64,000 nt of DNA from Octopus sinensis. Lineage: Eukaryota. The stretch spans positions 61,628,001 through 61,692,000 of the forward strand of contig NC_043003.1 of assembly GCF_006345805.1 (NCBI RefSeq), written 5' to 3'. The notes beneath the pieces were generated by a model. The model saw only the letters and a list, made by a program, of their open reading frames with translations, was not told the origin of the DNA and did no database searches. The position numbers and the translations under genes were made by a program. Positions within the stretch are counted from its first letter, which is position 1; every line of letters starts with the position of its first letter. Shown here in pieces: positions 1,259-60,024 of the stretch.

Positions 1259-1710
1259 ATCTATCTATCTATCCGCTCAGTCAAAGTCGACTCACGGTCA
1301 CTTGTTGGATCAGTGTCCTCCAGTCAGTTCTATCCTGGGCCGCTTCTTTCAGATTGGCTATGTCCATTCCGGTATCCCTTATGATGGTGTCAAGCCAACG
1401 GGTTCTTGGTCGGCCTCTTCCTCTCTTGCCACTGACCATTCCGAGCATGATGTCCTTCTCCAGGGATTTTCTCCGCATAATATGACCGAAACATGCCAAT
1501 CTATGCTTGATGATCCTAGCTTCTAGCGACATTTTCTGCTTAAGAACTTCCCCATTGGTGAGCCTCGCTGTCCATGGAATCCGTAAAAGTCTTCTCCAAC
1601 ACCAAAGCTCGAATGCATTAATTCTCTTCTGGTCAGCTTTCTTTAGTGTCCAGGTCTCGCATCCATATGTTGCAATTGGGAAGACAATTGCATTCACCAA
1701 TCTGCATTTG
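1259..1710 (-). mobile_element. 5'-truncated RTE LINE (BovB-like C-terminus) with (GATA)n tail
   Basis: Open ORF VFPIATYGCETWTLKKADQKRINAFELWCWRRLLRIPWTAR...FGHIMRRKSLEKDIMLG..GKRGRGRPRTRWLD resembles the RTE-BovB C-terminal region; short 3' end GAGTCGACTTTGACTGAGCG then GATAGATAGATAG. Confidence 0.9.
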
Positions 1711-1741
1711 GGCTAGGGTTAGGGTTACATATATATATATG

Positions 1742-1972: not shown

Positions 1973-2615
1973 TAACATATATATATATATATATATATAG
2001 ATACATACACACACACTCATACACATATATGTATGCAAAGAGAGAGAGAAAAATACATGAGGAAATAACAGAGCAAGGAAAGAAAGTGAGAAAAGGAAAA
2101 GAAGCAACTTGATATGTGGAGATAGCAAAAGAGGGTGTTGAAAGGAAAATGTAAATTTACTTTATATTGTCTAAACACTGACTGATAATGGTTTAGTTTA
2201 AATTTTCATATAAGAATTGTTGATTTCTCAAAGCAATAAATATTTCACCTTGACATTCGCTACAGACATTTGTTTTTATTTTGAATCTTGTTATAAAGGC
2301 GATGTCTAAATATAATTGAATTTAAATCTATTGCTTTTGGAAATAAAATTTTATGTAAATGCAGAAATGTATATTGTAAATATTGATATCAAAAACGATT
2401 ATAAGAAAAATAAAAGTGCTTTGCCTTTAATATAATTCAATTAAAGATAACACAAAACCTATCCCTGAGAGTTGCCCAGAAATACCTTTTTTCCTTGCCT
2501 TTATTTTGTGTGTAAAAATATAATACATATATGTGAAAATATATAATTGGAAATACAAATTATTAAAAGAGTCTTTGATGTTATAGATATATATTAAATA
2601 ATACCTAAATTAAAG

Positions 2616-2626
2616 ATGTGTGTTTG

Positions 2627-2663
<37 letters not shown>

Positions 2664-2975
2664 CTATATATATATATATACACATATACACCTATATATA
2701 TATATATATATATATCCCTATACATGTATATATATATACATATACCTATATATATATATATATATATAATATATATATATATTATATATATATATCATAT
2801 ACATATATATATAACGGGATATACCTATGTATGTATACTATGTGTACATATATATCTATGTATATATATACCTATATATGTGTATATATATATGTATGTG
2901 TATATATATATATATATATATACGTGTATATATATATATATATGTATGCATATATATATATTTATATATATATAT
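2616..2975. repeat. (TA)n-rich simple repeat
   Basis: Long interrupted TA tract; source of spurious IY/YI ORFs. Confidence 0.95.
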
Positions 2976-3464
2976 CAAAGCATATGGAATGTTAGAGAAA
3001 CTTAGGTAGCAGTGTATTTGCATGCATGAATGGCTTAAGTGAAGTTCATTTGAAATGCATGAAAAATTATTTTGTTCAAATCTTATATCTGCAGCTATAT
3101 AGATAATAAAACATTTCATTCAGCTTTGACTGAATGAATGGATAAATGTAAGTTGAGTACTAAGAGACAGTCAATCATATAGATAGCAACAAATAGCACC
3201 ATCTTTACATTGGATTGATTATTGACCTTTTAAACTTTAATCTAGCCAAGGTCAACTTCATTTCCACTATCTCCAGTAATTAATAGAAGGGTCACAGGTC
3301 AAAATAGTTATATGTAGCAAGAGAGAACTGCATAGGATGTTGCTGTTAATGATATAGCAAAGTTAAACTTTCAATGTAAATTGAAATCAGCAGAATATCA
3401 ATTTTGGACGTAGGTAGCATACATTCACACAGACACAGACACACACATATACATATACACACAT

Positions 3465-6437: not shown

Positions 6438-7727
6438 TTGGGTTGGCAACTAAGTTCCCATCGTTTTTTTAAATTTTGGAATTTATTGCGTTTTTAAATT
6501 TTGGAATCTATTTTTTTCAAGAATTCTATTTTTGAATCATTTTGGAATCTATTTTGTCTTTTTTCTAGTTAATTTTAGTTAATTTTTGTTTATTTTCAGA
6601 TCATTAAAATGGAATGTCAAGTAAAGAAAAACAAGCATTTTTGACACCTCCTTCCTTTTGCTTTTAATCAAAGTTCTAAGGCTGCAAAAGCTGCTCGTGA
6701 CATTTGTGGTGTGTATAGAGAGGGTGCCATAGCTGAAAGAACCACTCGTGATTGGTATGTCAAGTTCAAAAATGGAAATTTTGACCTCAAAGACGCACCT
6801 TGTTCTGGCCGTCCAGTTGAGTTCAGTGAAGAGCGAGTAAACCAACTTTTGCCCGAAAATTCTCATCAAATGACAAGGGAACTGGCAGAGAAAATGGAAT
6901 GTTCCCACACTGCTATCGAGAAGCATCTTCACTCGATGATGGAGCATGGGTTCCACATGCTTTAAGTGACAACAACAAAAATCAACAAGCCACAATCTCC
7001 GCTGGCTTGCTTGCTTGTCACCGCTCAACTCATGGACACAAGCAATGATTTCTTTACCGAATCATTACTGGCAACGAAAAATGGTGCCTGTACATCAATA
7101 TGAAGCAGCGTATGGAATGGCTTAGCCCTGGTAAGGAATGGCTTAGCCCCGGTAAACAAGCGGGACTACGTGTGAAACAAGATCTTCATCCGCGTAAAAT
7201 GATGTTGTGTGTATGGTGGGACTGGGAAGGGATTATCCATTATGAATTGCTTGAACGGAACTATACAGTCATTGTAGAATTCTATGTTCAACAGATGGAA
7301 CAACTATTCAAGAGAAAAGACCTAATCGGCAGCATGGAGTTCTTCTGCTGCACAACAACGCCCACCCTCATATCACTAATATAACCAAGGAAGCCATTCA
7401 AACGCATGGCTGGGATGTGCTGCCACACCCGCCGTACTCTCCTGATTTGGCACCAATGGATTTCCACCTCTTTCGATCTCTTTCAAATGCTATGCGTGGA
7501 GTATCATTCATTACTGATGCAGAATTAAGAGCTTGGTTAGATCAATTTTTCAAGTCAAAATCAGGTAATTTCTACCAACAGGGTATTGTAAATCTTGTTG
7601 AATGTTGGGAGGAAGTTGTAAACAACAAAGGTGAATACATTATTGATTAATTAATTGTTATTTTTTATTAACCCTTTTAAAAAATTGAAATTTAAAAAAA
7701 ATGGCGGAAACTTAGTTGCCAACCCAA
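6438..7727 (+). mobile_element. Full-length mariner (DD34D) transposon, inactive
   Basis: TIRs TTGGGTTGGCAACTAAGTT / AACTTAGTTGCCAACCCAA flanked by TA; 1290 bp; disrupted transposase 6609-7650 with HTH, WVPHAL, ITGNEKW, LHNNA, YSPDLAPMDF (first two catalytic D appear as N), stops and frameshifts. Confidence 0.95.
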
Positions 7728-12965: not shown

Positions 12966-13707
12966 CTTAAAACAGTTCCTCTTTTCCTGTTTTTCTATAC
13001 TTTCATTGAGATGTGCACCAGTGAATTTTTTATTTGATCTCCAGTCAAAAATATTGAGGACTACAGGCACTGCTGTTTTTAGCAGTATGAGCACACACAT
13101 AACGTTTCACTCACAAGTTTAAGTATTTATGAGTTACACACATGACTCATTAGTTATCCACGCTTCAACCTTATTCAATTTTTACAGCTGCTACCTACCT
13201 CCACACTTCTCCAATTCCTTCATCTCCCACACCCCATACAATCTTGTAATCATGCCCTCTCATTTCTACTCACTTTGTAACCTTAAGGAGGCTACCTAGA
13301 TACTTGCTCTACACTATTTATCTCTGCAATTCCTATTGATCATTCTCACCACCACCACCACCACCATCATTTAACTTTCCATGCTGGCATGGGTTGGACG
13401 GTTTGACTCAGGACTGGCAAGCCAGGCGGCTGCACCAGGCTCCAATCTGATCTGGCAAGGTTTCTACACCTTGATGCCCTTCCTAACACCAACCACTCTG
13501 AGAATGTAGTGGCTGCATTTTATGTGCCACAGGCATGGATGCCAATCAGGCAGCACTGGCACTGACCACGTTCAAATGGTGCTTTTTACATGCCACCAGC
13601 ATGGGAGCCAATCAGGCAGCACCTTTCATCTAAATATGAGTAGCCATGTAGTTCTACAAGAACTTGTCTGACCCTCCTTGTCATACTTTAACCCCACATT
13701 CCCTAGT

Positions 13708-15670: not shown

Positions 15671-16040
15671 AGGTGTTATATATGGATAGTGAGACAGCAG
15701 TGAAAGTCTGTTGACAAGTAGAATCAACTAGAAAACGTATTAACAGTATAAAGAGACTACGTGTTAAATTTACTGGACTCCAGGAGAAAAAGAATCCTTG
15801 AATACTTGATGGCAACTTGGAAATTGAAAGGAAGAAGCTGGGGAAAACAAAGAGAAGAGACTCAATGGATGGCCTTAGAAGCAGGCTACAAAAAGGCAGT
15901 TAATACATGCTAAGTTATATGAGAGAAAGGAAGAGGTGGAGGGCCATGATCAATAATGCCTGTAGGAATGGCACAACGAAGAAAAGGGGAAGAAGAGAGG
16001 ATGGAGGAGAGAAGAAGAGGGGAGAAGAGAGGAGGGAGGA
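15671..16040 (+). mobile_element. RTE-type LINE 3' fragment (third family)
   Basis: Translates to LEYLMATWKLKGRSWGKQRE...RKRWRAMINNACRNGT, followed by a GAA-rich tail. Confidence 0.75.
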
Positions 16041-16632: not shown

Positions 16633-17562
16633 ACAAGTGCACTCAGAGAGCACAAACCTCTGCCAACGCATTACCAACATTTCTCTTTGTTTTCCCCAGC
16701 TTCTTCCTTTCAATTTCCAAGTTACCATCAAGTATTCAAGGAATCTTTTTCTCCTGGAGTCCAGTGATCTTAACATGTAGTCTCTTTATGTTGTTAACAC
16801 GTTTTCTGGTTGATTCTGCTTGTCTGCAGACTTTCACTCCTGTCTCATTATCCATATATGACACCTCTCAACAATTAACCAGAGATGATTTTTAAAATCA
16901 TCTGAAATAAAACTGACTGCTCTTACAAACAAGAATGCTAAAAATGAACCCAGTCACTCTCAAAGGGAAAAATTATCCAAATATATATATATTGAGTGAG
17001 AGGTGAAGGGAGAGGAGATGAAATACTAATACAGTGAAGGAGAAGGAGTGAGGGTAATAGCCATGACAGAGAGGGAGTGAGAGAAAGTAATGACAATGAA
17101 AAAGACAAAATGAAGTGGCAAATAGAGCGTCGTATGAATGAGAAAGTAAGGGGTGATAGATGAATAATGAAGGAGAGAGAGAAAAAGCAGATAAACAGCG
17201 TTTGAAGTCTGAATATATGTGTGTGTAAAAGAAAGGTATGCTTGTGTGCATGTGTGTGTACAATGGAAATAGTCAACGCTGAAAATGTGTGAGTATATGT
17301 GTGCATGTACAAGAGAACTACATGAAACTTTACATATACATGTAAAGTAAAGAAAATATAAAACATAATCCAGAATTCTTGTCTGGGACCGGATCGATCC
17401 CAAAATCTAATCAGTTCATGCCAGTCATGAGGCCAAACATCTCTGAAGGTTTTATCAGAATCCATCCAGCAGTTCTTGAGAATATCTTGTCCACAAACAA
17501 ACAATTAACAAACAAATGTAACTGTAAACAATACCTCCGCCTTCGCTAAGGCAGAGGTAATA
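16633..17562 (+). mobile_element. Helentron-like (HINE) composite element with cargo
   Basis: 5' sub-terminal ACCTCTGCC; 3' hairpin TACCTCCGCCTT-CGCT-AAGGCAGAGGTA (17532-17559, 11/12 bp); contains RTE fragment 16668-16866 and a second insert ~16980-17340. Confidence 0.7.
16668..16866 (-). mobile_element. RTE fragment, inverted counterpart of 15671-15862
   Basis: ORF 16573-16776 RRKRFLEYLMVTWKLKGRSWGKQRE; reverse-complement match to the 15.7-kb copy. Confidence 0.8.
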
Positions 17563-18872
17563 ACCCTTTCTACTAAAGACACATGGCCTGAAATTCGTAG
17601 GGAAAGGACTAGGGGATTACATCGACCCCAGTGTTTCACTGGTACTTAATTCATTGACCCCAAAAGGATGAAAGACAAAGTTGACCTCAGTGGAATTTGA
17701 ACTCAGAACGTAAAGACAGACAAAATACTGCTAAGTATTTTGCCCAGCGTGCTAACAATTCTGCCAGCTCGCCACTTTAGAAAGCAATTATAATTGAAGT
17801 CTACCTCTTAAACCTTTTGCCTGTTTAAATCATTTTCTTAAATTTGTCCTAAACTTCCATGCTTGTTTTCAGACTTTTCTTTAGTTAGCCCTTGTTCCAT
17901 ATGTTCTGAGTAATATAAAGATCACCTTTCATAGATTCCAAGTAAATCTGATGGATGAAAAAAATAAGGAATGTGTATCATATATGACATATGCCTTGTG
18001 TATTCTTACATGATACATAGGACAAGCAAAGGATTAATAAATACCAATTTACATAACTGTGCCAGTTGTACATAAAATGCATCATTCGGGCATGGCTGAT
18101 GCCAGTGCTGCCTGACAGGCACCTGTGCTGGTGGCACGTAAAAAGCACCATTTGAGTGTGGCCGATGCTAGTGCCACTTGACTGGCACTCATGCCGATGG
18201 CACATAAAATGCACCCACCACACTCTCAGTGGTTGGCATTAGTAAGGGCTGCCAGCTATCGAAACGTTGCCAAATCAGATTCGAGCTTGGTGCAGCCTCC
18301 CAGCTTGCCAGTTCTCAGTCGAACTGTTCAACCCATGTCAGCATGGAAAGCGGACATTAAATGACAACAACAATGATGATGATGATGATGATGATGATGG
18401 TAAGTGGTATTTAATAATGGTTTCAAATTTTGGCACAATGCTAGCATTTGGGGGAGGGGGTTCATTGACTACATCAACCCCAGTGCTCAACTGGTACTTC
18501 TTTTGCCAACCCTGAAAGGACAAAAGGCAAAGTTTACCTCAGTGCAACTTGAACTCAGACTGTAAAGACAGATGAAATACCACTCAGCATTCTGTCCAGT
18601 ATGCTAACAGTTCAGCTTGCAGCCTTATAGCAGTATTTAACAAGCCTTTCTACTAAAGGCGCAAAGCCTGACATTTAGTAGGAGGCGACAAGACAAATAC
18701 ATTAACCCCAGTGTTTCACTGGTACTTAATTTATCGACCCCGAAAGGATGAAAACAAAGTCGACTTTGCCAGAATTTGAGCTCAGAATGTAGCAGCAGAT
18801 GAAATACTGTTAAGCATTTCGCCCAGTGTGCTAACGATTCAGCCAGCTCACCACAGTATTTAATAATCGTTT

Positions 18873-20312: not shown

Positions 20313-21775
20313 TATATGAGAAGAATCTTACCCCAAGAACTGTGAGACAAACAGTAAACATGCAGTAAATGCTGAGGGGAAAGAAATGCTTGATGGGTAT
20401 GTAGTCACTGATTAGGTCATAGACTGTGGTGAAAGGACATTAACAGACTAACCAATTAACCAACAGATCGACTGATTAATTATCTAAATGATTAGGGACA
20501 AAACTGAAGTGAAACATAGCTAGTGCATGTTTTTATTAGCAGTAAGACCCTCCCAAAATACATCAATATTGCTTCCCAACCAAATGGGTTCATGTTCAGT
20601 CCCTGTGTGGAACCTTGGGCAAGTGTTTCTATAGCCCCTGACTAATCAAAGCCTCGTGAGTTGAATTGGTAGGTAGAAACTGAAAGAAGCCCACCATGTG
20701 TTTGTGGGGTGTGTGTGTGTGTGTTACTGTCTCCTTGCTGTAACATCATATGAGAGTTGTAAATGAGTGTCATTGTGATGCAAGAGGTGTTCTTTGTTTC
20801 CAATCTTCTGTGAAAACATGTCTGGTCAAGGGAGAAATATTAACATGCTCGGAAAGAGGTGAGGGTTGGTGACAGGAAGGGCATCCAGATGTAGAAGACC
20901 CACTTCAATAAACTCCATCCAACCCATGGAAGCAAGGAAAAGTGGATGATAAAACAATGATGAAAGCACACTACCTTATGTACTGAGTTCAATTTCTCTT
21001 ATTTATACCATAAAACTTGTGTATGTGTGTTTAAATATCACAGTATAGTTTCAATTTCTGTTTAAAGCCATTTCCCATTTCACTTATACTGCTAATGCTC
21101 TTAGGAAAAGTATGATTGACATACTTCTGATTTACCTCTACCGAAATTCAGGCACTTTTGTTCCAAGCACAAAGAAATTAGTTTTAATCTGAAGCAGATT
21201 CGAACAATTGTTTAAACAGATATCCACTTAAAGAGATGAATTTTTATGGTAAATGGATTGTTTCCTCATTAGAAGCTATTATATATATACATGACTATTT
21301 ATTACTCGAGTTTTAAATATAATTACTTTTCAAGTAGAACAAAGCAAAAATAGTGAAATTTGCTGCTTGTGTTGTCACAAGGTGTTCTAAACATTACAAA
21401 TGACATGAGAATCCTTATTGTTTAACTACAAATATTTGCAGTCATCTCACTAGCAATCAAACCAGGAATATTTTTGTCAAGAAAATCAATACTTATGTCA
21501 ACAATACAGAAACAATCATCAGAAATGTTTTTGAAATTCAATTTACCTTAATTATCCAAAGTTATCAAATATATTCTAGATGCAGACATAGCTGTGTGGT
21601 TAAGAAACTTGCTTCCTGACCATGTGGTGTTGGGTTCAGTCCCACTGTGCCTCAACTTGAGCAAATGTCTTCTATTATAGCCTACGACCAACGAAAACCT
21701 TGCAAGTGGATTTTGCAAGCAGAAACTAAAAGAAGTCAGAAACTAGAAACAGAAACTAAATTAAAAGGAAAAAAC

Positions 21776-24900: not shown

Positions 24901-25124
24901 ACATCTTAACCACATAGCCATGCTTGAAGTTGTGATAAAGAATAAAAATTTCTGATGAAAAAAAGGTGGAGTTAGTTCTTGAACACAAATGTAACAATAG
25001 GAATAATTTCTTGATATTTTTCATTCAATAGGACTGAAATGGTAAGGCGGCGAGCTGGCAGAATTGTTTAAGCTAGTAGGTTATGGCTTAAAGAAGATTT
25101 ACTTGCTATTTCTAAAGGCTGAGC

Positions 25125-25167
<43 letters not shown>

Positions 25168-25519
25168 AATTCTATTTCTTATGTTACGTTCATCCAATAA
25201 TCGAAAGACCCTTTCTGTTTGTCATTTCCTCACGTTTGTATTTGTACATTTGTTTGCCTTGCTCAAGGGCTTAATGCCTTCAGCTTAAGTCCTTGGCCCA
25301 ACTGGTTTCAAGTAGTAATGGAGAGGACTGGTCAAAACTACATAGACATTACAAACTCCGACTGAAGAAGCAATTGGCTGCAAATGATCCATGTATCTTG
25401 TTTTGTCCTGTTTGCTGTTGTTGTGCTATCGTCCTTTTCTTGCTTGTTATGTTTTGATGATTTCCGTTTGTTGTGTCTTCTTACATGACTGGCTCCTGTG
25501 CTGGTGGCATCTAAAAAGG

Positions 25520-25750
25520 ACTATCTGAAGTGATCGATGCCAGGCCCACCTGACTGGCACCTGTGCTGGTGACACTTAAAAAGCACCCACTACACTCTCA
25601 GAGTGGTTAGCATTAGGGAGGGAAAACAGCTGTAGAAACATTGCCAGATCAGATTGTAACCCGGTGCAGCCGCTGGCTCTCCAGACCTCAGTCAAATTCT
25701 CCAACCCATGGTAGTATGGAAAACTGATGTTAACGATGATGATGATTATG

Positions 25751-25802
<52 letters not shown>

Positions 25803-26666
25803 CACCATTATCATCAACATCTCACCATTTAATGTCTGCCTTCCAATCATGCATGGGTTGGACGATTTGACAGGAGCCAGCCAGGTAGAAGACTACCCCA
25901 GGCTACTGCGTCTGTTTTGGCAAGGTTTTTACAGCTGGATGCTCTTCCTAACACCAACCATTGTGCAGAGTGGACTGAGTGCTTTTTATGTGGCACCAGC
26001 ACAGGTGAAGTCAGCTTACAGCTGGATGCCCTTCCAATTGTGTGTGTATGTGTGTGTTACTGTCTCCTGCTTTGACATTGTTCGATGGCTGTGAATGAAT
26101 GTCATCATCATCGTTAACATCTGACATTCATTCTCAGCCATCGAACAATGTCAAAGCAGGAGACAGTAACACACACACACACACAATTGGAAGGGCATCC
26201 AGCTGCAAAATGACTTCACCTGTGCTGGTGCCGCGTAAAAAGCACTGTCCACTCTGCACAATGGTTGGTGTTAGGGAGAGCATCCAGCTGTAAAAACCCT
26301 GCCAAAACAGACGCAGTAGCCTGGGGTAGTCTTCTACCTGGCTGGCTCCTGTCAAATCGTCCAACCCATGAATGATTGGAAGGTAGACATTAAATGGTGA
26401 GATGTTGATGATAATGGTGATATATATATATATATATAATCATCATCATCGTTAACATCTGTTTTCCTTACTGCCATGGGTTGGAGGATTTGACTGAGGT
26501 CTGGAGAGCCAGCAGCTGCACCGGGTTACAATCTGATCTGGCAATGTTTCTACAGCTGTTTTCCCTCCCTAATGCTAACCACTCCGAGAGTGTAGTGGGT
26601 GCTTTTTAAGTTCCACCAGCACAGGTGCCAGTCAGGCGGGCCTGGCATCGATCACGTTCAGATAGT
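25520..26666. repeat. ~1.15-kb inverted duplication (palindrome) with 17-bp spacer
   Basis: 25520-26104 is the reverse complement of 26122-26666 at roughly 95% by eye, apart from (TA)n length. Confidence 0.95.
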
Positions 26667-27389
26667 AAGTGGTGTCATTCTTTTCTAATCTTCTGTGAAA
26701 ACTTGTCATATCATGGGGAAATATTATCACAGTTGGAGACAGGTGAGTGTTGGACACAGGATGGGCATCTTGCCACAGAAAATCTGCTTCAACAAAGTCT
26801 ATCTGAGCATGGAAAAGAGGACATTAAAAGGATGATGGTGATGATGATAATTTGTGTTTCAACTGAGGAACAGGTTTGATTTCTGTAACAAATACCTTTA
26901 CTATATATAAGAAAAGGTTAAAAAAAATACAGAAAAAAGAAATCCTAATTAAGAGAATCAGTTAGGGAGATTGGAAAGAATTAAGTACATATGAATTGGT
27001 GCAGACAGTTCAGAAAAATAATTAAAAAAAAGCCTCTGCAACACTAATGTCTATGATGGTGTAGTGCAAAAGCCACAAGCACAGGTATGGTATTGTGGTT
27101 AATAAGTTCATTTGAAAACCACATCAAAAGGAGAAGTAAACATAATTTGTAAACAGAGTAATTGCTTTGGAGTATCCAAAATTGTACTGAGTTTAATCTT
27201 ATCTAATCAAAGAAGTAACTTATCACTTATATCAGAGATTCTTAAATAAATTGTTTCATTAGTTCTGTACTTTCTAAACCAGGAAATGTTTTTTTATCCC
27301 GTTTGAGATGTTTTTAATATAAGCTTGTGTGCAGGTATTTGGGGAATAATAAAAAAAAAGATGATGGGGAAATTAATTTGGGTGTTATG

Positions 27390-27789
27390 AATCTCGTGGG
27401 TATGGTATATGAGAGAGAATGGGGGAGGGATAGAGAGTGAGAGAGAGAGAGAGAGTGAGTGTGTGTGTGTATGAGAGAGAGGGAGAGATAAAGAGAGAGA
27501 GAAAGGAAGTACAAGAAAGAGAAAAAGTGTGTACAAGAGAGAGAGAGAGAGAGAGAGAGAGAACAAGAGAAAGAAAAAACGTGTGTACGAGAGAGAGATG
27601 GAGATAAAGAGAGAAAGGGAGTACAAGAGAGAAAGAGAGTGCAAGAAAGAGAAAAAGTGTGTATGAGAGAGAGAGAGTGAAAGAGGGAAGGAAAGAGGGA
27701 GAGAAAGAGAGTGAGAGAAAAGGAGAGTTGGGGAGAGATAATGTACAAGAGAGAGAAAGGGAGTACACGAGAGATGGAGGGAGAGAGAG

Positions 27790-29701: not shown

Positions 29702-29713
29702 AATTCCACATAC

Positions 29714-29855
29714 CTATTTTGCTTTCTATTATAATCTTTCTTGAAGGAATCTTCTTACTCAAAATTTCCAAACACTCAAGTAGGACAGTTTCATTTTGAT
29801 CTTTCACACACAGTTTTTCCTTGATTGATGCAATCTCATCTGTAGTCACAACTCT
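29714..29855 (-). CDS. TCEANC2: Internal coding exon of a TFIIS N-terminal-domain protein, TCEANC2-like
   Basis: Acceptor TTTTTTTACTTTTCAG and donor G/GTATGT; 142 bp, phase 0 to 1; encodes RVVTTDEIASIKEKLCVKDQNETVLLECLEILSKKIPSRKIIIESKI(G), which aligns without gaps to recalled human TCEANC2 [48 protein letters not shown]. Confidence 0.8.
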
Positions 29856-30314
29856 CTGAAAAGTAAAAAAACACAAAAGTAGTGAATATTAATGTATGTG
29901 CCAATACCACCATCACGATCATAAGATCCAGTTCTTCCCATAGTGCCACAAGGTGAACAGTTTGGCAGTAATATACACAATAATAAAGAGAACCACCAAC
30001 CTTTGTAGGTGTGAATTTCAACTGTACGCTCTCTCTCAATTGCCAACTAATTATTTAACTGGTTAGACTAGGTGTATTTCATGATTCCATCAGCACAAGA
30101 AATGTTGTCTACCAAAACTAAAGAGCAGTGTGCAGGAACCATATTTTATGTAACCATGTGGCATAGTGGTTAGGGTGTTGCATTCACAATTGCCAGATCA
30201 TGGGTTTGATTTGCAGACCAGGCAGCATGTTGTGCTCTTGAGCATAAAACTTCTTTTCATGTTGCTCTAGTACTGTGTAGGGATCAGCAAAGAATAGACC
30301 CAAAATTTCCTCTC

Positions 30315-33900: not shown

Positions 33901-35930
33901 ACATTTTTCCTTACTTCACTTTCATCTTTTTTTTCATGTTTTATTGCACATTTTCCTTCAAATCAAATACTATCAGATATAGTAATACAGGTTGCTTGTT
34001 TTAGCCCTCAACCTTCACAGCGCTATGCGTATGATCTTCCACCACCTTTTATCTTTAACATAACTAATTTTGCTAAGGTTTAGCAATATATATAATGTAT
34101 GTACGTATGTATGTATGTATGTATGTATGATGTATGCATGCATGCATGCATGCATGTATGCTTACATTTTATGTTATTCATCTAATAAAAACACATTCAA
34201 AATTAATATTATATATAACTATACCTGACACTCTATGCCTTCCCCATCCACTCTGGCAAATGACCCAGCATTATGTCACTGTATTATCATTACTATTCTG
34301 CTGCTTTACACTATCTGATATCTCCAACTCACTCTTGGTCCCCTTGCTCCGCTCGCTCATTCTTTTCCACCTCATACTGTGAAAATCCACCCTTGAACCA
34401 CCTTATAACCATTTTTATCACTTTCCAGTTCCACCTTGTTCTACTCTTACCCTTTTGTTTCATATTTTACTCCTCTTCTAGCAAAAAGTTGCCCCCACAG
34501 GGTCCATAGTTTTACAAGCAGCTGGTGGCATGAAAAAAGCACTCAGTACATGCTGTAGAGTAGTTGGTATTAGGAAAGGCATCCAGCCATAGAAACATGC
34601 CAAAGCAAACACTGGAGCACAATGTAATCCTTGAATGCACCAGATCCTGTCATACAGTCCAACCCACATCAGCATTGAATATGGACATCAAATGATGATG
34701 ATGATGGTGATGATGATGATGATGATGTAAATTTTCTTTGTTATTAATTTTTCTTCTCTGTAATAAATTTTTTGATGTAGTCACGCTATCTCATATTTCA
34801 TGTGGATGTATGTGTGTTTTGAATAGTAAACTCTTTAAAACACAACACATTTTAAAATCTACAATCATTTAATTTCCTTCTAATTAATCATATGAAGTCA
34901 AGATTAAAGAAAAATTTAACTTTATAGCAGTCAAATGCTGTCAGTGGAATACAGCTATTAAATCACAATGAAATGAAGCGGAGATATTTTGACTAAAAGT
35001 GAGAAATCAAAAACCAAATGACTCTAGGGAAGGTCTCAAGAAATAAAGAGAAAAAAATGAATAAAACAGCCATTCCGCAAATAAAAAAAGTACTATAAAA
35101 AAAGAACAATAGCAACAAGGGCCAAAAAAAACCATAGGGGAAAATCCATCAACCAATATAGGAACTTTGTAAAAACAGAAGCAATGGTGATAGCCTTAGA
35201 AAGAATGTGGGGTAGGCTGCCAATCAATTTTCCCTTGTAGCAATTTGAAGTACTTTTGCTTCTGGTTTCATACCATAGCTTCTGATAAAAGAAAATTTTC
35301 TGTAAAAGCCCTGAGGGCAGAATGAGACAAATGACTGCAGCTGTTTCAATGTTGATGATCTGGTATGGCTGACTGGACGTTCAGCTCTTTGGTGCTAGAA
35401 GCAAAATCCCATCTGCATATACAGATAGGGTGAGAGAGACAGAGAGAAAGAGAGAAAGGGAGGAAGAGAGAGAGAAGGTGGGGGAGAAAGACAGAAATTA
35501 CAATTCATTAATTGAACACAATAAACATAAACACTTTCCCTTCTGTTTCCATGATGGCATATAAACACAGGGAGAGAAAGAGAAGGACAGAGAGAACAGG
35601 AAGAACATTAAAACAAGAAAAATAGGAAAATGTCAGATGCCAAATAAGTCAGCACCAAAATAAGCGGTGCCAAAATGTCTCATACACTACTGTGGGTGCC
35701 TCTTGTAGAAGATCACTCTGTTTTTAGATCCCCTGACTGAGGGTAACTTCTTCCTAGCAGCCATGCAAGCCTTGGCTTTCTTCTCTGAATAAGCTTTTAA
35801 TTAATTCACACTTTATCATTAATAATCTAATAATTATTAAAATGTGCAACCTTCTTTTATCATGTCTAAATTCTTAGAGTAGAACTAGGAGAGTATTGAA
35901 GTTCGCTTGAAGCATTGTGTATTGTTTGTA

Positions 35931-36392
35931 AAGAATAAAAAGTTTTGAATGGTACAACAATGCACTATAATATAGACAACGGGCTATTTACCTGTTGTAA
36001 TTTAGTCATCCAATATCTGATATGATATTTCGGAATAATATTCCTTCTTCAGATATTCTTAGATGGAGTCACTACTATTATTGGTTTTCTAACGACTTTT
36101 TATTTTATTTTTTGGAAGCGTCTCGGCAGTGGACTCATGATGCTCCTTCCGGAATTCCTCATGAGAAGTATGTAAGGTTGGCCATGTCTCAATCTCATGT
36201 GTGCTGGTACATCCATAGCGCTGCCTCTAAGTTACATATTATACGTGCCAGCGACTCCATCTAAGAATATCTGAAGAAGGAATATTATTCTGAAATATCA
36301 TATCAGACTATGGATTACTAAATTACAACAGGTAAATAGTCCATTGTCTATATTATAGTGCATTGCTGTACCATTCACAACTTTTTATTCTT
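35931..36392. mobile_element. Fold-back element with ~142-bp TIRs, TA-flanked
   Basis: 35931-36072 is the reverse complement of 36251-36392 with few mismatches; TA at 35929-35930 and 36393-36394. Confidence 0.85.
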
Positions 36393-37609
36393 TAGAGTAG
36401 AACATTTGAAGTTCAAGTTATGCCATTTCTCTCATGGTCAACTTTATGTGGATTACTCACATTAACCTCTTATGTAAGATTAACTGGAAATACTGTTTTA
36501 TAGAGAAACTTGATTAGTTTGTTTTGTTCAAATTATACCTTAACATTATATTAAAGTTTCCAGTAATCCTAAAGAAACTTAATATTCATGGAGAGACATA
36601 CTTTTTAAGTGAGGGTAAGACTAAAATATACAATACCTGGGCTTATTTGCTTCTGCTACTTCAGAATGCAGGAAAAAAATCGATTTTAATTTCAAAATAA
36701 GATCCCTGAGAAAGTAGTGAGAAGGAAGAAAGGAAAGCTGAGGATAATTTGACAAACCTCTACTTTCAAAGGAAACTTCTAATTCTTGTTAAGGGCCATC
36801 TCCGGTATCTAGATGTAGGGAAGCATATTAGCTAATGAATGAATACTGTGAGCAGTCATTCGCGTAGTGATGAGCAACAGAAATTATACATACAACACAC
36901 CTGTCTCTTTCATTTTGTCATATTTTTTTGCTTATTGCCCAATGTAACATGAGAGTGAGAAACTTTCATATCAACATGAAATTACAAACCCATAAGCTAT
37001 AATACATATTTCAGACACTCAATATTATATACAAACTTCCATGTAAACACATAAGCTGTAAATGTCATGATTCAAACTGTCACATCTGACATAAAGCTAC
37101 AACACTTTCTTGTCAGTTGACTTTGCATTGACAACATTACCTTCCTATAGAAAATTCCACATAAAAATATGATTACCAATGGATGCTTTATAAGTAGCAA
37201 AATAGAAACTCAAGAATGACCACAGAAATTCAGCAGATATGAAGTTAACCATGAAATCTACCAGGAATTATCATTGAAAAATGTTATAATTTTATCAGTT
37301 ATAATAGCATTCCTAGTTTACAGTAGAAAGTACAAACAACTCTCTAATACTATGATCATTTCATTCAGATGATAGACTAACAAGATCTTGAAATACTAAT
37401 GGAAATATAAAGAAGCTTAAAAAAGAAAAAGATTGAACTCAAACAGTCATGTCTATAATACATATTTGAAGGGAAAGCAGCTCCTTGGTTACAGAAATGT
37501 GTGTGTTTTTTATTCATTATTTCAGCCCGACTGTGTGGTCGAACAAGTGTCTTCTACAATAGAATCAGGACAACCAAAGCTTTGCGAGTAGATTTGGTAG
37601 AAGGAAAGG

Positions 37610-39340
37610 TTGCTGAATGAAGAAAATGAATGGGATAAAGAGAGTCTGCCGAATGTTGACCCAACAGAGGGACCAGCTATCCGAGTTGATAGTTCTGTGG
37701 TAGCTAAGGCAATTAGAAGCATGAAGACAGGGAAAGCCCCAGGCCCATCAGGAATCACTGCAGAGATGCTCAAAATGTCTGGTAGTGTCGGCTATAGCCT
37801 AGTCACCCATATAGTTAATCAGGTGATACACAAAGGGGTCATACCCAATGACTGGTGTAGCAGTATAATAGTCAACTGCTACAAAGGTAAAGGTGATGCC
37901 CTAGATACAAATAACTACAGAGGTATCAAGCTGTTGGACCAGGTGATGAAGGTTACGGAGAGGGTCATAGCCCAACTAATTAGAGAGAGAGTTAGTTTAG
38001 ATGAGATGCAGTTTGGGTTTGTGCCAGGGAAAAGTACTACTGATGCTATATTCCTGGTAAGGCAGCTGCAGGAGAAATACCTAGCCAAAGATAAGCCCCT
38101 GTACCTGGCTTTTGTTGACATGGAGAAAGCCTTCGACAGGGTCCCCCGATCCCTTATCTGGTGGGCAATGAGAAAACTAGGGATAGATGAATGGTTAGTG
38201 AGAGCTGTGCGGGCCATGTATAGGGACGCCGCTAGTAGGGTGAGGGTTCGAAATGAGTACAGTGAAGAATTCCGAGTAGAGGTAGGGGTCCACCAAGGCT
38301 CAGTACTCAGCCCCCTCCTATTTATCATAGTCCTCCAGGCAATAACGGAGGAATTCAAGACAGGATGCCCTTGGGAGCTCCTCTATGCTGATGACCTTGC
38401 TCTAATTGCTGAGTCGCTATCAGAACTGGAGGAGAAGTTTCAGGTGTGGAAACAAGGATTAGAATCGAAGGGCCTCAGAGTCAATCTAGCTAAAACCAAA
38501 GTCGTAATCAGTAGGAAGGTAGACAAATCACAAACACCTTCAGGTAGATGGCCCTGCTCGATCTGTAGAAAAGGTGTAGGTAGAAACTCTATAAGATGCA
38601 CCAAGTGTAAGCTATGGACACATAAGAGATGCAGCAATGTCAAAGGAAGGCTAACTAGGAAGATGGTTTTTGTATGTGGCAGATGCTCAGGAACAATAAA
38701 CACTGAAAATGCTCTGAGACCAACTTCCGTCACTTTCCAGGGAGAAAAACTAGAAATAGTTGATAGTTTCCGTTACCTAGGTGACCAAGTCAGCAGCGGG
38801 GGTGGGTGTGCTGAAAGTGTAACTGCTAGAGTAAGAATAGCTTGGGCAAAGTTCAGAGAGCTCTTACCTCTGCTGGTGACAAAAGGCCTCTCGCACAGAG
38901 TGAAAGGCAGACTGTATGATGCGTGTGTACGAACAGCCATGCTACATGGCAGTGAAACATGGGCCGTGACTGCTGAGGATATGCGTAAGCTCGCTAGAAA
39001 TGAAGCCAGTATGCTCCGATGGATGTGTAATGCCGGTACTCACACTCGGCAGAGTGTAAGTACCTTGAGAGAAAAGCTGGACCTAAGAAGCATCAGTTGT
39101 GGTGTGCAAGAGAGACGTTTGCACTGGTATGGTCATGTGGCGAGAATGGATGAAAATAGTTGTGTGAAAAAGTGCCACACCCTAGCGGTTGAGGGAACCT
39201 GTGGAAGAGGCAGACCCAGGAAAACCTGGGACGAGGTGGTGAAGCACGACCTTCGAACTTTAGGTCTCACTGAGGAAATGACTAGAGACCGAGACCTCTG
39301 GAAGTGTGTTGTGCGCGAGAAGACCCGGCAGGACAAGTGA
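37610..39340 (+). CDS. LINE ORF2 fragment: reverse transcriptase with PHD-like finger, no endonuclease
   Basis: KAPGPSG, YRGIKLL, QFGF, AFVDMEKAFDRVP, GVHQGSVLSPLLF, YADD (38384-38395), FRYLG; C4HC3 pattern 38555-38686; no stops in 576 codons; the start at 37610 is a truncation point, not a true start. Confidence 0.9.
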   Translation: MLNEENEWDKESLPNVDPTEGPAIRVDSSVVAKAIRSMKTGKAPGPSGITAEMLKMSGSVGYSLVTHIVNQVIHKGVIPNDWCSSIIVNCYKGKGDALDTNNYRGIKLLDQVMKVTERVIAQLIRERVSLDEMQFGFVPGKSTTDAIFLVRQLQEKYLAKDKPLYLAFVDMEKAFDRVPRSLIWWAMRKLGIDEWLVRAVRAMYRDAASRVRVRNEYSEEFRVEVGVHQGSVLSPLLFIIVLQAITEEFKTGCPWELLYADDLALIAESLSELEEKFQVWKQGLESKGLRVNLAKTKVVISRKVDKSQTPSGRWPCSICRKGVGRNSIRCTKCKLWTHKRCSNVKGRLTRKMVFVCGRCSGTINTENALRPTSVTFQGEKLEIVDSFRYLGDQVSSGGGCAESVTARVRIAWAKFRELLPLLVTKGLSHRVKGRLYDACVRTAMLHGSETWAVTAEDMRKLARNEASMLRWMCNAGTHTRQSVSTLREKLDLRSISCGVQERRLHWYGHVARMDENSCVKKCHTLAVEGTCGRGRPRKTWDEVVKHDLRTLGLTEEMTRDRDLWKCVVREKTRQDK

Positions 39341-39605: not shown

Positions 39606-40339
39606 TAAGAGAACTTTCCGTTTCGCGACCGTTGCCAGCACTGCCCCGTTTCGTGTCCGTTGCCAGCCTCGCCTGGCCCTCGTGCCGGTGGCACATAAAA
39701 AGCACCGTCCGTTCGTGGCCGTTTGCCAGCTCTGTCTGGCACCAGTGCGGGTGGCACGTAAAAAGCACCCACTACACTCACGGAGTGGTTGGCGTTAGGA
39801 AGGGCATCCAGCCGTAGAAACACTGCCAGATTTGACTGGGCCTGATGAAGCCTTCTGGCTTCACAGACCCCAGTAGAACCGTCCAACCCATGCTAGCATG
39901 GAAAACGGACGCTAAATGATGATGATGATGATGATGATGAAACTGGAAGAAGCTTGCCCTATGTTTGTGTGTGTGCATTTGTGCCCTTGTCTAGTCATCG
40001 TGTGATAGTTGTAAATGAACATCACCATCATACAAGCGATGTCATTTGTTTCCAGCTTGCCATAAAAAAAATGTCTGACCATGGGGAAATTTACCTATCC
40101 AAGAAACAGGTGAGGGTTGGCAAGAGGAAGGGCACCAGGAAAAAACTCTCAAAAAACTCTACTGACCTGTGTAAGCCTGGAAAAATGTACATTAAATGAT
40201 TATGATGATGATGATGATGACAGTCACATCAGATTACTGCTAGTTAGAGACTGAATTTTCGTTTTTTTTTTTTACATTGTCCATGTGAAAACATGTCGCA
40301 AGAATTGAGATGGACTTTTAAAACACATTTATACCATTA

Positions 40340-42040
40340 CCAGGTCAAGTCAAAAGTTTTTTCCTGTTTCAAACCTTAATCAAAAGTGCAAACAAATTAC
40401 ATATGAAAAGCATTTATTCACCAAAATATATCCCATCATATTCTATTCTCTGTTGCCATCTTTGTGCCATAAATTCAATTCCATGCTTATACCATTTGGC
40501 TGGCTTAAAGGCTAAAAAACTCCATGCACCCATTTCCAACTATTGGAAATGAGCCATGGTTCAGAAATGGTGGTAATCTAATCATGCAAGATCTGGACTG
40601 TAAGTAATATGAGGCAACACTTGCAGCCCCTCAAGTTCCATAAACTTGTTCTTGGTCATATTGGCAGTGTGTGCTAGGGAATTGTTATGCAGTAATAGCG
40701 CATGTCTTCAACTGACCAATGAGGGGTAATGGGCTTTCAAAGGATCATATACTCACTGCAGTTGCAGAGCATAAGGATCAGCATCCATAGCATGATCATT
40801 TGAGACAAGATCAAAGGGCAACCACACCCTTGAAATTTCACCAAGCATGCAACAAGACCTTCTGTTCAAGCCATCCTTCTTTGACAACAGGTTCTGAAGC
40901 CTAGCCAGAATGAAGACACTGATTTCTCTTATTAGGATTATGAAAATAGATTTATTTTTCATCCCTCGTCACAATTTGATTCCAAAAATGGGAATCTCAA
41001 GGATTTGCCTGCAGTTGCTTGAAAATGTTCGCAAATTATAGAGCCAGGTCATTGGTCAGTTCATGAGGAGCTTCTCAACAGTGTCTGTTCAAAAGGCCAA
41101 GCTTATGGAGATGTCAGTTGATGGCACTTTGTGAAGGACTAAATTCTGCAGAAAATGTAGGAGTGCTTTTACTTGGCTGGTGTTCATCCATTTCAAGCAA
41201 GGCCACATCTGCCCCAACAGAAGGTCTCACTGACCTTGATTTGTCATTGAGTTTGGTGTCACCTTCCTTGAAATGTCTGAACCGGTTTTGTGCCACATAT
41301 TTATTGACAGTTCCTGGGCCATCCACATCATTAATTTCTCTTTCTGCAACCATTTCACTCAGTCTCTTTCTTGACAGGTAGCAAAACCTGGCTGTAATTG
41401 TAATTTTTTCCAATACTCATTATCAAAGTGGTAAAATGAAGAATTCACAATTAAGGTTTATACGTTTTATACTCTTTACTTGTTTCAGTTATTTGACTGT
41501 GGCCATGCTGGAGCACCAACTTTAGTTGACTTATTCTTTGTAAAACTAGTACTTATTCTATCAGTCTCTTTTGCCGAACTGCTAAGTAACAGGGATGTAA
41601 ACACACCAGCATCGGTTGTCAAGTGATGTTGGGGGGACAAATTACAGACACACAAACATATACACACACACGTACACATATATACGACGGGCTTCTTTCA
41701 GTTTCCGTCGACCTTATCCACTCACAAGGCTTTGGTTGGCCCGAGGCTATAGTAGAAGACACTTGCCCAAGGTGCTACGCCGTAGGATTGAACCCGGAAC
41801 CATGTGGTTTGTAAGCAAGCTACTTACCACACAGCTGCTGCTATGCCTATATGTCTGTCCTTGTTTGTCCCCTCTGTATTTAGCCCCTTGTAGGTAGTAA
41901 AGAAATATATGAAAATAAAGAATAAACAATTTAGCAATGATTGGACAACAAGTCATATCAAATTAAAGACATAACAAAGCGATAGAAGTTGCCAAAAGTC
42001 ATCAGGGAAAATCTGAAAAAAAACTTATAACTGAACTTGG
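40340..42040 (-). mobile_element. Decayed full-length mariner with SINE insertion in its 5' leader
   Basis: Imperfect TIRs CCAGGTCAAGTCAAAAGTTTT / AAAACTTATAACTGAACTTGG with TA flanks; transposase remnant 40414-41413 (HTH, PHELT, IVTRDEK, LHNN, YSPDLA); SINE material ~41470-41905; ~1.27 kb net. Confidence 0.85.
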
Positions 42041-42799
42041 TAGACTCTGTTAATTTCTTGATAGTACTGTATACTACATGGATGTATATAAACACGCACA
42101 CATTCACACAATTGTCTTTTACACAAGTGCAATATCGACAGTCAATCAATTGTTTAACGTTGCCGCATCAAAGACATTCAGCACTGGGTCATATCTATTG
42201 ACTATTGGGGACAAAGAATGAGATTCCTAGAATTAGCTTTTTCATGGACTTACTTATTATTAACAAAGTAAAAAGCAGCTACAATAAGAAATTAAACAAG
42301 AGTTAAGGAAAAACCATGCACAGTAAGATACTTGCTATTTTGATGTATATAAAATAAACAGAAAACAGAATCAAAAGAAAGAAATAAAAAAGACAGACAG
42401 CCATCGAGAATCAACTCCATTTAGCTTGATTTACACTCAAATATATTATTTGTATTCTCAGGCAGAGTTCGATTTTCTTTTTTTTTTTTCTCTTTTTTAT
42501 TTTGCAATCACAATTATAAGTTTATTGTAACTTATTCTTAGTCCAACAGAGTATTGCACTAAGTTAAATACAGCCAGTTGATGTCATCTGCTACTGTAGA
42601 AGCTATAAAGTCAGGTTAGACAAATATAAAGCACTTGATCGATTGTCAGCTGGCATGTAATGAAAAACCTTCAGCCAATTAAATAAAATCATGGTTGGTT
42701 CAGGTGTTTCCTATTTTATTTGTAGTGCTTCATTTTGCTCAGAATATGCAGTAATTATGCAACATGTGTTTTTCTTATATTTTAATTTAAGGTAAATTA

Positions 42800-42914
42800 T
42801 ATATGTGTGTATGTGTTTGTGTGTATTATATATATATATATACATCATGGTGTGTGTATATATACATGTGTGCGTATATATATATGTATGAATGTAGGTA
42901 GGTATATACATACG

Positions 42915-42958
<44 letters not shown>

Positions 42959-43024
42959 GGTGTGTGTATATATACATGTGTGCGTATATATATATGTATG
43001 AATGTAGGTAGGTATATACATACG

Positions 43025-43068
<44 letters not shown>

Positions 43069-43350
43069 TATATACATATATATATACATACATATATATG
43101 TATGTATACATACATGTAAATATATATGTATGTGTGTATATGCATGTTTGTGTGTATGTATGTATATATATATGTATGTGTGCATGTGTGTATATATATT
43201 ATACGTAATATATGTATGTATATATATGTATGTGTGTATGTATGTATATATGTATGTGTGTGTATATATTATATTATATATATATGTAATATAAGTATAT
43301 GTGTGTGTGTATATGAGCATATATATATGTGTGTGCGCATATATACACAC
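42800..43350. repeat. TA/TG compound microsatellite with ~110-bp tandem unit
   Basis: TACATCATGGTGTGTG...GTAGGTAGGTATATACATACG repeated at ~42841 and ~42951. Confidence 0.9.
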
Positions 43351-58767: not shown

Positions 58768-60024
58768 TTAGGTAGTCCAGAAAGTTCTGAGTGTTTTTTA
58801 ATATGCAAAACAGGATATAAATAATTGACCTTTCAATAAATTTTATTCAATAAAATAATTTCCATTATTATTAATGACCTTTGACCATCTATCAAGCAAT
58901 TTAAATTTTCCATCAGCATAAAATTTGACTGGTTTTGAAGAAATAAAGTTATCTTGATGCATTTTGACTCCATCTAAATCATTAAATATTTTTCTTTAGA
59001 ATGAGTTCTGTGGAGACAGAAACAAGAGGTAGTCAGATAGCACACCATCAGGAGAATATAGTGGATGGGGTAAGAGATTCCAGCCAAGTTCATGTAACTT
59101 TGTTCAGGTAGCCAAAGACACATGCGGTCAGGCATTGTCTTGTTGGAACACTACCCCTATCCTGTTGGCAATCTCCAGCCTCGATTCTTTAATTTTTTGT
59201 TTCAAATCAACCAGCTGATGACAGTACACATCGGAATAAATGGTCTGGTTCTGTAAGAGAAGCTCATAATAAATAATGCCGTTATAACCCCATCAAACAC
59301 AAATTATAGCTTTTTTGGCATGGATATTTATCTTTGGTTGCTGTTTCGGGGGATCCTTACACAAACTCCAGGATCTTTTCACACTATCTTTTCATATACA
59401 ATCCATTTTTCATCTCCAATCACAAGTTGTTTCAAAAAATGCATGCTTTCATTCCATTTCAAAAGCATATCACAAATGGAATACTTATTCAAAAAATTTT
59501 TTTCTGAGAGTTTGTGAGTGACCCATACATTTTGAAAAAATGTATCCTAGCTTCAATAGGTGTTCATGAGTCATACTTTTAGAAACTTCAAACTCCACTG
59601 CAAACTCTCTAGTTGTGATATTAGAGTTTTCTTTGATTTTTGCCTTAAAAACATCTTCATTGAATTTTGAAGGTTTTCCACTGCAACTGTCATTTTCCAA
59701 GCTAAACTCTCCAGCTTTAAATTTTGCAAACCACCTTTGAACAGTTGATTCACCTACTCCATCATCACTCTAAACTTCACAAATGATTTTGCAAGTCTTT
59801 GTGAAACATTACAACGTGAATATGAAATTTTTGGTTATTCATTTCAAATGTCAATAAAGGGTAACTGGAATGAACGATAAGTCTATTTTTAGTCAGGAGC
59901 AAAGAAGAAATGCACTACCACTTCAAGCAATGCCAAAGCCTTAACTGTGATATGTTTCAGGTGTGTTCAATGAAGTGTTAAAAGATTTAGCTTAAAAACA
60001 CTCAGAACTTTCCAGATAACCTAA
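58768..60024 (-). mobile_element. Decayed full-length mariner inserted at a TA inside SINE-A
   Basis: TIRs TTAGGTAGTCCAGAAAGTTCTGAGTGTTTTT / AAAAACACTCAGAACTTTCCAGATAACCTAA; SINE TCTTCTA|CTATAGCC split with TA duplicated; transposase remnant 58843-59842 with GDEKW, QDNA, YSPD..SDY. Confidence 0.95.

Follow-up and report, generated by a model that had tools for sequence, protein, structure and literature searches.

A palindrome of 1.15 kb in an intron of the TCEANC2 gene of Octopus sinensis is very likely a genuine, single and old mutational event, namely a fold-back inverted duplication, as had been proposed in a first-pass annotation of the same DNA. The structure is hairpin-forming and duplicates a segment of about 0.55 kb. 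Its anatomy, the direction of copying, the local template of its spacer, the independent divergence of its two arms and its intronic position can all be observed directly in the 64-kb stretch of DNA analysed here (the window). The palindrome exemplifies a known class of mutation, at a size that is under-documented, and there is no evidence that it has a function. It provides a clean natural example of a 0.55-kb fold-back inverted duplication in which all three junctions are readable.

Palindrome anatomy and arm divergence

The boundaries of the palindrome were established by direct reading of positions 25200–27100 together with a repeat finder. The bases directly outside the arms, 25519 and 26667, form a mismatch, and the outer boundary is therefore exact. 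The features of the palindrome and of the repeats that make it up are as follows.

25520–26104, plus strand: left arm, 585 nt; the original source segment to judge from its flanks, with native sequence contiguous on both sides
26105–26121, plus strand: spacer between the arms, 17 nt, TCATCATCGTTAACATC
26122–26666, minus strand: right arm, 545 nt; inserted inverted copy of the left arm
25486–25750, plus strand: SINE-A, a full-length member of a family with a duplicated 5′ head; collinear across 25520 in MAFFT alignment
25724–25745, minus strand: 3′ tail of SINE-A, GATGTTAACGATGATGATGA on the plus strand; its reverse complement is the spacer template
25746–25802, no strand: (TA)n tract; the right arm has 37 nt less of it
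25800–26014, minus strand: SINE-B, of the same family as SINE-A in opposite orientation; 69–76% identical to other copies
26028–26104, plus strand: 5′ part of SINE-C, including the leading (GT)n of its family and ending in ...GAATGAATGTCA
26667–26852, plus strand: 3′ remainder of SINE-C, which picks up again at AAGTGGTGTC and has a GATGAT tail at its end

When the left arm is globally aligned to the reverse-complemented right arm, 525 positions match, 19 carry substitutions and there are 4 indels; identity is 96.5% over aligned bases, or 89.6% when gap columns are counted. The four indels comprise 37 nt in the (TA)n tract, 2 nt in the (GT)n tract, and two others of 1 nt and 2 nt. The first-pass annotation had placed the two arms and the 17-nt spacer at these same coordinates, which the repeat finder and the global alignment both recover, and its figure of ~95% arm identity holds as a description. 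In a comparison across the whole window, the palindrome far exceeds all other inverted repeats within 5 kb in length and in similarity, the runners-up being 186 nt at 91% and 145 nt at 93% identity. The window itself is rich in repeats, with 41% of it recurring within the window, and inverted repeats with unique arms are also present elsewhere in it.

The pieces of the arms were resolved by BLAST of the left arm against the window and by MAFFT alignments. Each arm is a composite of SINE-A minus its first ~34 nt, the (TA)n tract, SINE-B, a short piece of SINE core followed by (GT)n, and the 5′ portion of SINE-C. This agrees with the earlier description of the arms as mosaics, in that three SINE-derived pieces are accompanied by the SINE-core fragment and the microsatellites. 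Other copies of the arm SINEs in the window are 69–82% identical to the arm by BLAST, compared with 96.5% between the arms themselves.

The flanks of the palindrome reveal the direction of copying. The left boundary at 25520 lies ~34 nt inside SINE-A, and SINE-A continues leftward from it, collinear in the MAFFT alignment with three full-length relatives that share the duplicated 5′ head (13614–13376, 18113–18360 and 39673–39933). SINE-C, which represents a second SINE type, is divided between the inner end of the left arm and the sequence beyond the right arm. Joining 26104 to 26667 restores its family sequence except for a 9-nt gap, defined against six family copies (at 20752, 22104, 28663 on the minus strand, 40004, 55735 and 62815), and the split SINE lacking ~9 nt that had been noted before is thus recovered. 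Because SINE-A is unbroken over 25520 and SINE-C resumes at 26667, the left arm is native, and the spacer and right arm constitute an insertion. The left arm is, on the reading of these repeats, the source of the inverted copy. The inverted copy directly adjoins this source, which is itself contiguous with native sequence on both sides, and the ancestral order of the locus is SINE-A, (TA)n, SINE-B (inverted), (GT)n and SINE-C. With respect to repeat boundaries the breakpoints of the palindrome are arbitrary, falling ~34 nt into SINE-A and midway through SINE-C.

These breakpoints bear on whether the palindrome could instead be mobile in origin, either as a Foldback-like or MITE-like transposon with TIRs of ~550 bp or as two independent SINE clusters lying head to head. 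The arms do consist of SINE sequence in a genome rich in such repeats, and the share of the window that recurs within it, together with its other unique-armed inverted repeats, would be in keeping with such an origin. However, the composite arm has no second copy in the 64 kb, its best non-self matches being single SINEs at 69–82% identity, and no further copy of the two-arm unit was found by BLAST within the window. At the left boundary SINE-A is cut ~34 nt into the element and continues outside the palindrome, SINE-C supplies the inner ends with its 5′ part and has its 3′ part beyond the palindrome, and the flanks (AAAAAGG and AAGTGG) show no target-site duplication. A TIR transposon was rejected because both ends of the palindrome fall in the interior of host SINE copies and show no target-site duplication. 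Head-to-head independent SINE insertions were likewise rejected, as they cannot yield a mirrored order of four fragments and two microsatellites at 96.5% identity. A mobile origin of either kind is exceedingly unlikely, and the earlier statement that the palindrome is not one TE with TIRs stands, with SINE-A unbroken at the left boundary and SINE-C split by the insert.

The two arms have diverged independently. Their 19 substitutions comprise 13 transitions and 6 transversions (2.2:1), five of them at CpG, while three of the four indels are in microsatellites or affect a single base. Polarisation against 11 family copies assigns four derived changes to the left arm and eight to the right, and leaves the rest ambiguous. 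The changes derived in the left arm include a 1-nt deletion at 25529/30, and the right arm keeps the SINE-family state at the four sites where the left arm is derived. The Jukes–Cantor distance between the arms is 0.036.

This pattern was weighed against an assembly artefact, in which the right arm would be absent in the animal and would derive from a fold-back chimeric long read (a missed adapter or an amplification chimera) or from a misplaced inverted haplotig. A palindrome with a short spacer is a known artefact shape, and look-ups of the junction-spanning ORFs in public assemblies yielded no independent confirmation. Exact-protein look-ups there with the right-junction ORF (84 aa), the centre ORF (64 aa) and the exon ORF (84 aa) returned no match, and a homology search with the right-junction ORF, able to catch an empty-site ORF (MS???KWCHSF...), returned no candidate. 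An exact scan with the 41-nt palindrome centre gave 0 matches in a metagenome collection that is without cephalopod genomes. The divergence of the arms nevertheless speaks against an artefact, as the first-pass annotation had held: derived changes are found in both arms, and substitutions with a 2.2:1 transition bias, five of them at CpG, are unlike the random indels of long-read error. The right arm is not a chimeric read of a single molecule, because it keeps ancestral states that the present left arm has lost; with the family state at four sites, including a 1-nt indel, it is not a noisy copy of that arm. A misplaced haplotig is unlikely because the distance of 0.036 exceeds the reported heterozygosity of the O. 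sinensis genome, 1.10%, roughly threefold (PMC9795677). The structure is also internal, returning to unique flank within 9 nt, and contains a templated 17-nt spacer, which would not be expected from a read chimera. We therefore consider an artefact very unlikely.

The spacer, its template and the three junctions

The spacer and its immediate flanks (26102–26123; TCATCATCATCGTTAACATCTG, 22 nt) are identical to 26440–26461 in the right arm; against the left arm, where the counterpart is the reverse complement of 25724–25745, there is a single mismatch. With at most three mismatches allowed, this 22-mer has three matches only in the 64 kb, against 0.00 expected in shuffles. The tail of SINE-A has a private 1-nt deletion (GTT-AACGATGA, with TAA compared with TAAA in nine other family copies), and the spacer carries the same private GTT-AAC deletion as SINE-A at 25724–25745. 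As this deletion is common to both, the template of the spacer is precisely the SINE-A copy at 25486–25750. The T at 25725 is derived in the left arm, the family having A or G at this site and the right arm keeping A, and the spacer agrees with the ancestral form of the arm, CATCTG, still present in the right arm. Since this lone difference is a derived left-arm change, the spacer matches the arm as it was at the time of the event. The earlier proposal that the spacer was templated from inside the arm is upheld by both the uniqueness of the 22-nt match in the window and the shared private deletion. The spacer could alternatively be a later “centre-break” repair scar of a once-perfect palindrome; a hop during the original event is the simpler account because the spacer exactly matches the tail of the arm's own SINE-A.

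The extent of foreign sequence in the spacer depends on what the split SINE-C originally contained at this point. For the nine “missing” bases, the six SINE-C relatives, which are only six in number and 70–80% alike, give the consensus CCATCATAC (...ATCA/CCATCATAC/AAG...). The start of the spacer, TCATCATCG, matches this consensus at six of nine positions (chance P ~0.01 at p = 0.25 per site). To judge from these relatives, the sequence GTCA(Y)CATCAT(AC)AAGTGG very probably stood at the native locus, which would imply a shared stretch of 7–10 nt, ~10 nt of foreign sequence and a loss of no more than 2–3 bases. The first ~7–9 nt of the spacer may accordingly be native SINE-C sequence or microhomology, and probably only ~10 nt (CGTTAACATC) are truly foreign to SINE-C and copied from the tail of SINE-A. 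In the first-pass annotation, the loss had been put at 9 nt and the whole 17-nt spacer had been taken as templated; both figures were probably over-counted, given the agreement between TCATCATCG and CCATCATAC at six of nine positions.

Three junctions can be read in the product. At the first, the switch out of SINE-C probably used a microhomology of ~7–10 nt, represented by the TCATCATCAT overlap of SINE-C with the reverse-complemented SINE-A tail. At the second, between the SINE-A-tail copy and the inverted arm, there is a 2-nt TG overlap at 26122–26123. The third, the closing junction at 26666/26667, has 0 nt shared on either side. The event had previously been described as a double template switch, of which the one-off templated inverted copy is retained here, with three junctions in place of two.

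Proposed course of the event and comparable systems

The proposed event would have started from a break or a stalled 3′ end inside SINE-C, just past ...GTCA(Y)CATCAT. This 3′ end would have paired with the complementary GATGATGATGA tail of SINE-A, located 370 nt upstream, through ~7–10 nt of microhomology, either on the same strand or on a sister or lagging template. Some 10 nt would then have been copied, comprising CGTTAACATC followed by TG, before the end released and snapped back on its own terminus via a 2-nt TG/CA match. From there, extension by ~585 nt would have copied the arm back to 25520 within SINE-A, and the displaced new strand would have been joined to the other side of the break at AAGTGG, without microhomology. 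The net product would be an inserted inverted copy of 25520–26104, with at most 2–9 nt lost. The order of the hops, initiation at a break or at a fork, and the polymerases involved are what we infer from this product. Synthesis could also have run in the reverse hop order, from the right and with the 0-nt junction first, and gene conversion between the arms could make the event older than a divergence of 3.6% suggests.

The first-pass annotation had attributed the palindrome to FoSTeS/MMBIR, which in its purely replicative form involves neither a double-strand break nor end joining. The nascent strand of a stalled or collapsed fork would switch twice onto a template of opposite sense, initially at the tail of SINE-A and next at its own position, copy ~585 nt backwards and return 0–9 nt downstream. 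Such a course is possible, if on balance doubtful. Junctions 1 and 2 have microhomology (3–10 nt and 2 nt, respectively), iterative switching characteristically leaves a short insert templated from nearby sequence (PMC8421209; PMC10710096), and the near-exact return to the departure point matches the geometry of template-switch mutations. Strict MMBIR/FoSTeS, however, has microhomology at every switch, and priming on a new template needs some pairing, yet 0 nt are shared at 26666/26667. The attribution thus holds for two of the junctions, the closing junction being at odds with what the strict scheme predicts. A break followed by fold-back synthesis and end joining fits at least as well as MMBIR, and we rate it somewhat above pure fork switching because a blunt closing junction is unexpected in strict MMBIR. 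The fork and break models give an identical sequence product, and sequence alone can neither separate them nor fix the order of the hops.

Two other routes were considered and rejected. Hairpin-opening P-nucleotide footprints are far too short to account for 585 nt, and NAHR between the inverted SINE-A and SINE-B would invert a segment, not duplicate it.

The closest counterparts of a fold-back event with end joining are the local fold-back inversions of 5 to ~150 bp obtained in a yeast HO-break assay (Yu et al., 2024, PMC11724301). The yeast pathway needs Pol delta synthesis at one end and NHEJ/alt-EJ capture of the other, with microhomology of 0–5 bp (PMC11724301). As in the octopus palindrome, the inverted copy lies beside the break, a short microhomology near the 3′ end primes synthesis, and almost nothing is lost; capture of the far end at 0–5 bp of microhomology is likewise comparable to the octopus closing junction, with 0. 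The octopus copy differs in its length of 545–585 bp, compared with 5–150 bp, and in an extra abortive hop 370 nt away, which leaves ~10–17 templated central bases. Furthermore, the octopus event is germline-fixed in an animal intron, whereas the yeast break is induced.

Template-switch mutations, under the Löytynoja and Goldman model, create hairpins in a single step and are often intronic (Walker et al., 2021, PMC7954356; Monttinen et al., 2023, PMC10710096). They share with the octopus locus a brief switch in the opposite sense, a return near the point of departure, and a perfect reverse-complement repeat that then decays by point mutation; a switch of this type at a fork, within or between strands, could yield the octopus product too. 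Their stems measure tens of bases (30–55 nt in the miRNA study), whereas the octopus stem is about ten times longer and includes a nested second switch. The size of the octopus copy speaks against the proposed course, as 545–585 nt is several times beyond the documented sizes and needs a processive polymerase and long strand displacement.

At the other end of the size range, large fold-back inverted duplications and MMBIR/FoSTeS events are known from human disease and cancer (Hermetz et al., 2014, PMC3907307; Al-Zain et al., 2023, PMC10622511). In these, too, a duplicated segment is inverted about a short spacer where the strand folds back, and junctions carry templated insertions. They span kb to Mb and usually involve a dicentric or terminal deletion or a triplication (DUP-TRP/INV-DUP), in contrast to the simple two-copy structure of the octopus event, in which the original sequence is rejoined within 9 nt. 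Such events are well documented at 5–150 bp and at kb–Mb, and less so in between. The octopus locus also preserves a nested abortive hop, the template of which is pinned to one SINE copy by a private deletion.

Intronic position and the predicted hairpin

The gene context was identified from a stop-free peptide of 49 residues encoded on the minus strand of the window, which matched a 213-aa protein in a representative library. A homology search with this 213-aa protein led to XP_029639141.1, transcription elongation factor A N-terminal and central domain-containing protein 2 [Octopus sinensis]. Residues 32–79 of XP_029639141.1 are 100% identical to the peptide from the window, which is flanked by canonical splice sites. 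The orthologues of O. vulgaris and O. bimaculoides each depart from this peptide at a single residue, so that the window represents O. sinensis or a source indistinguishable from it.

29712–29861, minus strand: TCEANC2 exon encoding aa 32–79, with acceptor ttttcag/AGAGTT and donor AAAATAG/gtatgt

The TCEANC2 protein has Med26/TFIIS-N and TFIIS-M domains. Pfam searches with the partial exon ORF and with a 128-aa ORF inside the arm returned no match, and no other TCEANC2 exons are detectable in the 64-kb window. The annotated span of the gene is 186.6 kb in O. sinensis (GCA_006345805.1), 154 kb in O. bimaculoides and 183 kb in O. vulgaris. The palindrome lies ~3 kb downstream of the donor of this exon, in the following intron, and is transcribed as the minus strand. 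Its location in a TCEANC2-like intron, which had been raised as a condition in the first-pass annotation, is confirmed by the position of the exon ~3 kb upstream in the transcript sense.

The minus-strand RNA of 25520–26666 is predicted to fold into a single hairpin of ~550 bp at −1046 kcal/mol. The pre-mRNA duplex of ~550 bp that had been anticipated is thereby reproduced as a prediction, and every minus-strand pre-mRNA would, according to this fold, carry a near-perfect hairpin of that length. In structural terms, the prediction is of a long, near-perfect intramolecular duplex in a transcribed region, as looked for in ADAR substrates and hpRNAs. Across metazoans, an octopus among them, A-to-I editing acts mainly on young inverted repeats that lie close together in transcribed sequence (PMC9989829). 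By analogy with these, hyper-editing by ADAR or dicing of the hairpin in the TCEANC2 intron is plausible.

The palindrome is most likely a neutral relic, because the pattern of substitutions is one without selection for pairing. On the transcribed strand, seven of the 13 transitions lead to G.U pairs and six to A.C, and so there is no bias toward preserved pairing; no compensatory pairs are seen among the arm differences. A selected RNA element, whether a source of hpRNA/endo-siRNA or miRNA, a structure that recruits or titrates ADAR, or an element that regulates the splicing of TCEANC2, is very improbable. The palindrome is indeed transcribed within a long intron, its predicted duplex is very stable, and it has persisted long enough to accumulate 3.6% divergence, while introns are known birthplaces of template-switch hairpin genes (PMC10710096). 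In addition to the lack of a pairing-preserving bias and of compensatory pairs, however, the 37-nt length difference and the other indels have been tolerated, and the content of the arms is decayed SINEs and microsatellites. A search of 25000–27500 against Rfam returned only sub-threshold matches to miRNA-precursor shapes at the central hairpin, on both strands (for example, 51.8 bits compared with a gathering score of 98); these matches are to shape only.

The stronger proposition, that a half-kilobase template switch made a functional long-hairpin RNA locus in one step, acting as an endo-siRNA or miRNA-like source or as a local ADAR recruiter, we regard as very improbable. If true, it would extend the birth of hairpin genes by template switching from stems of ~50 nt to those of hpRNA size, in a lineage famed for RNA editing.

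The palindrome resembles inverted Alu/SINE pairs and hpRNA loci in presenting a long intramolecular duplex within an intron, formed from close and little-diverged inverted repeats. Inverted Alu/SINE pairs are usually two independent insertions of the same family, 10–30% diverged and hundreds of bases apart, whereas the octopus arms are a duplicated composite, 3.5% diverged and separated by 17 nt. If fold-back events of this size are common in the SINE-dense, long-intron octopus genome, they would constitute a steady source of very long and very young intronic dsRNA, and such a supply would be relevant to the origin of ADAR substrates and of hairpin RNA genes. The locus is a useful test case for RNA-seq and small-RNA mapping. 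A strong structure is also predicted for DNA at the centre of the palindrome, where the central 147 nt fold as single-stranded DNA at −74 kcal/mol (z = −17.6).

TCEANC2 exon and its intronic setting

The sole coding exon found within the 64-kb window belongs to the TCEANC2 orthologue, the host gene of the fold-back palindrome, with an annotated gene length of 187 kb.

29712-29861, minus strand: TCEANC2 exon, residues 32-79, assigned by protein identity to XP_029639141.1

The exon peptide shares 100% identity with O. sinensis XP_029639141.1; against the orthologous proteins of O. vulgaris and O. bimaculoides there is a single residue difference in each case. Outside this exon, the window consists of intron and repeats.

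Additional inverted repeats

Two inverted repeats are present in addition to the palindrome.

35929-36394: compact inverted repeat, 145-nt arms, 176-nt spacer
15671-15856 and 16681-16866: inverted repeat, 186-nt arms, 824 nt between them

The arms of the compact repeat are 93% complementary, and its outer ends read TA|AAGAATAAAAAG...CTTTTTATTCTT|TA. Such ends would be compatible with either a MITE-like element flanked by a TA target duplication or a further local fold-back. No further copies of its arms were found in the 64-kb window. Arm complementarity in the longer repeat is 91%, and the region between its arms contains the tail of a SINE as well as low-complexity, purine-rich sequence. The arms of this repeat likewise have no additional copy within the 64-kb window; transposon ends and a local inverted duplication are candidate origins.

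Dispersed repeats and low-complexity tracts

13376-13614, 18098-18360, 39673-39933 and 25486-25750: main SINE family, full-length copies
37610-39340, plus strand: uninterrupted 576-aa ORF
1284-1712, minus strand: additional reverse-transcriptase C-terminal fragment
6645-7647 (plus), 59131-59769 (minus) and 41117-41416 (minus): frame-shifted mariner/Mos1-type transposase remnants
27400-27700, 2600-3000 and 42700-43300: extended, imperfect tracts of (GA)n, (TA)n and (TATG)n

In the full-length SINEs, a head of ~60 nt is tandemly duplicated (CTGACTGGCACCTGTGCTGGTGGCAC.TAAAAAGCAC x2), while many other copies of the family carry a single head. Elements of the SINE-C type (the SINE split by the palindrome's inserted arm) have the same 3′ core and GATGAT tail as this family but differ in their 5′ part, which begins with (GT)n. 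An Rfam search returned no tRNA-like match in the SINE copies at 25-27 kb.

The ORF encodes a reverse-transcriptase domain (RVT_1, E = 1.4e-32), with a weak PHD-finger match, and coincides with the GC peak of the window (0.50). It seems to represent a young copy of a LINE-type retrotransposon within the intron. In the mariner/Mos1-type remnant on the plus strand, HTH_48 is matched at 6645-6962 (E = 1.6e-14) and DDE_3 weakly at 7255-7647. The (GA)n block lies shortly to the right of the palindrome and accounts for the strong local GC skew (+0.33, 26-28 kb).
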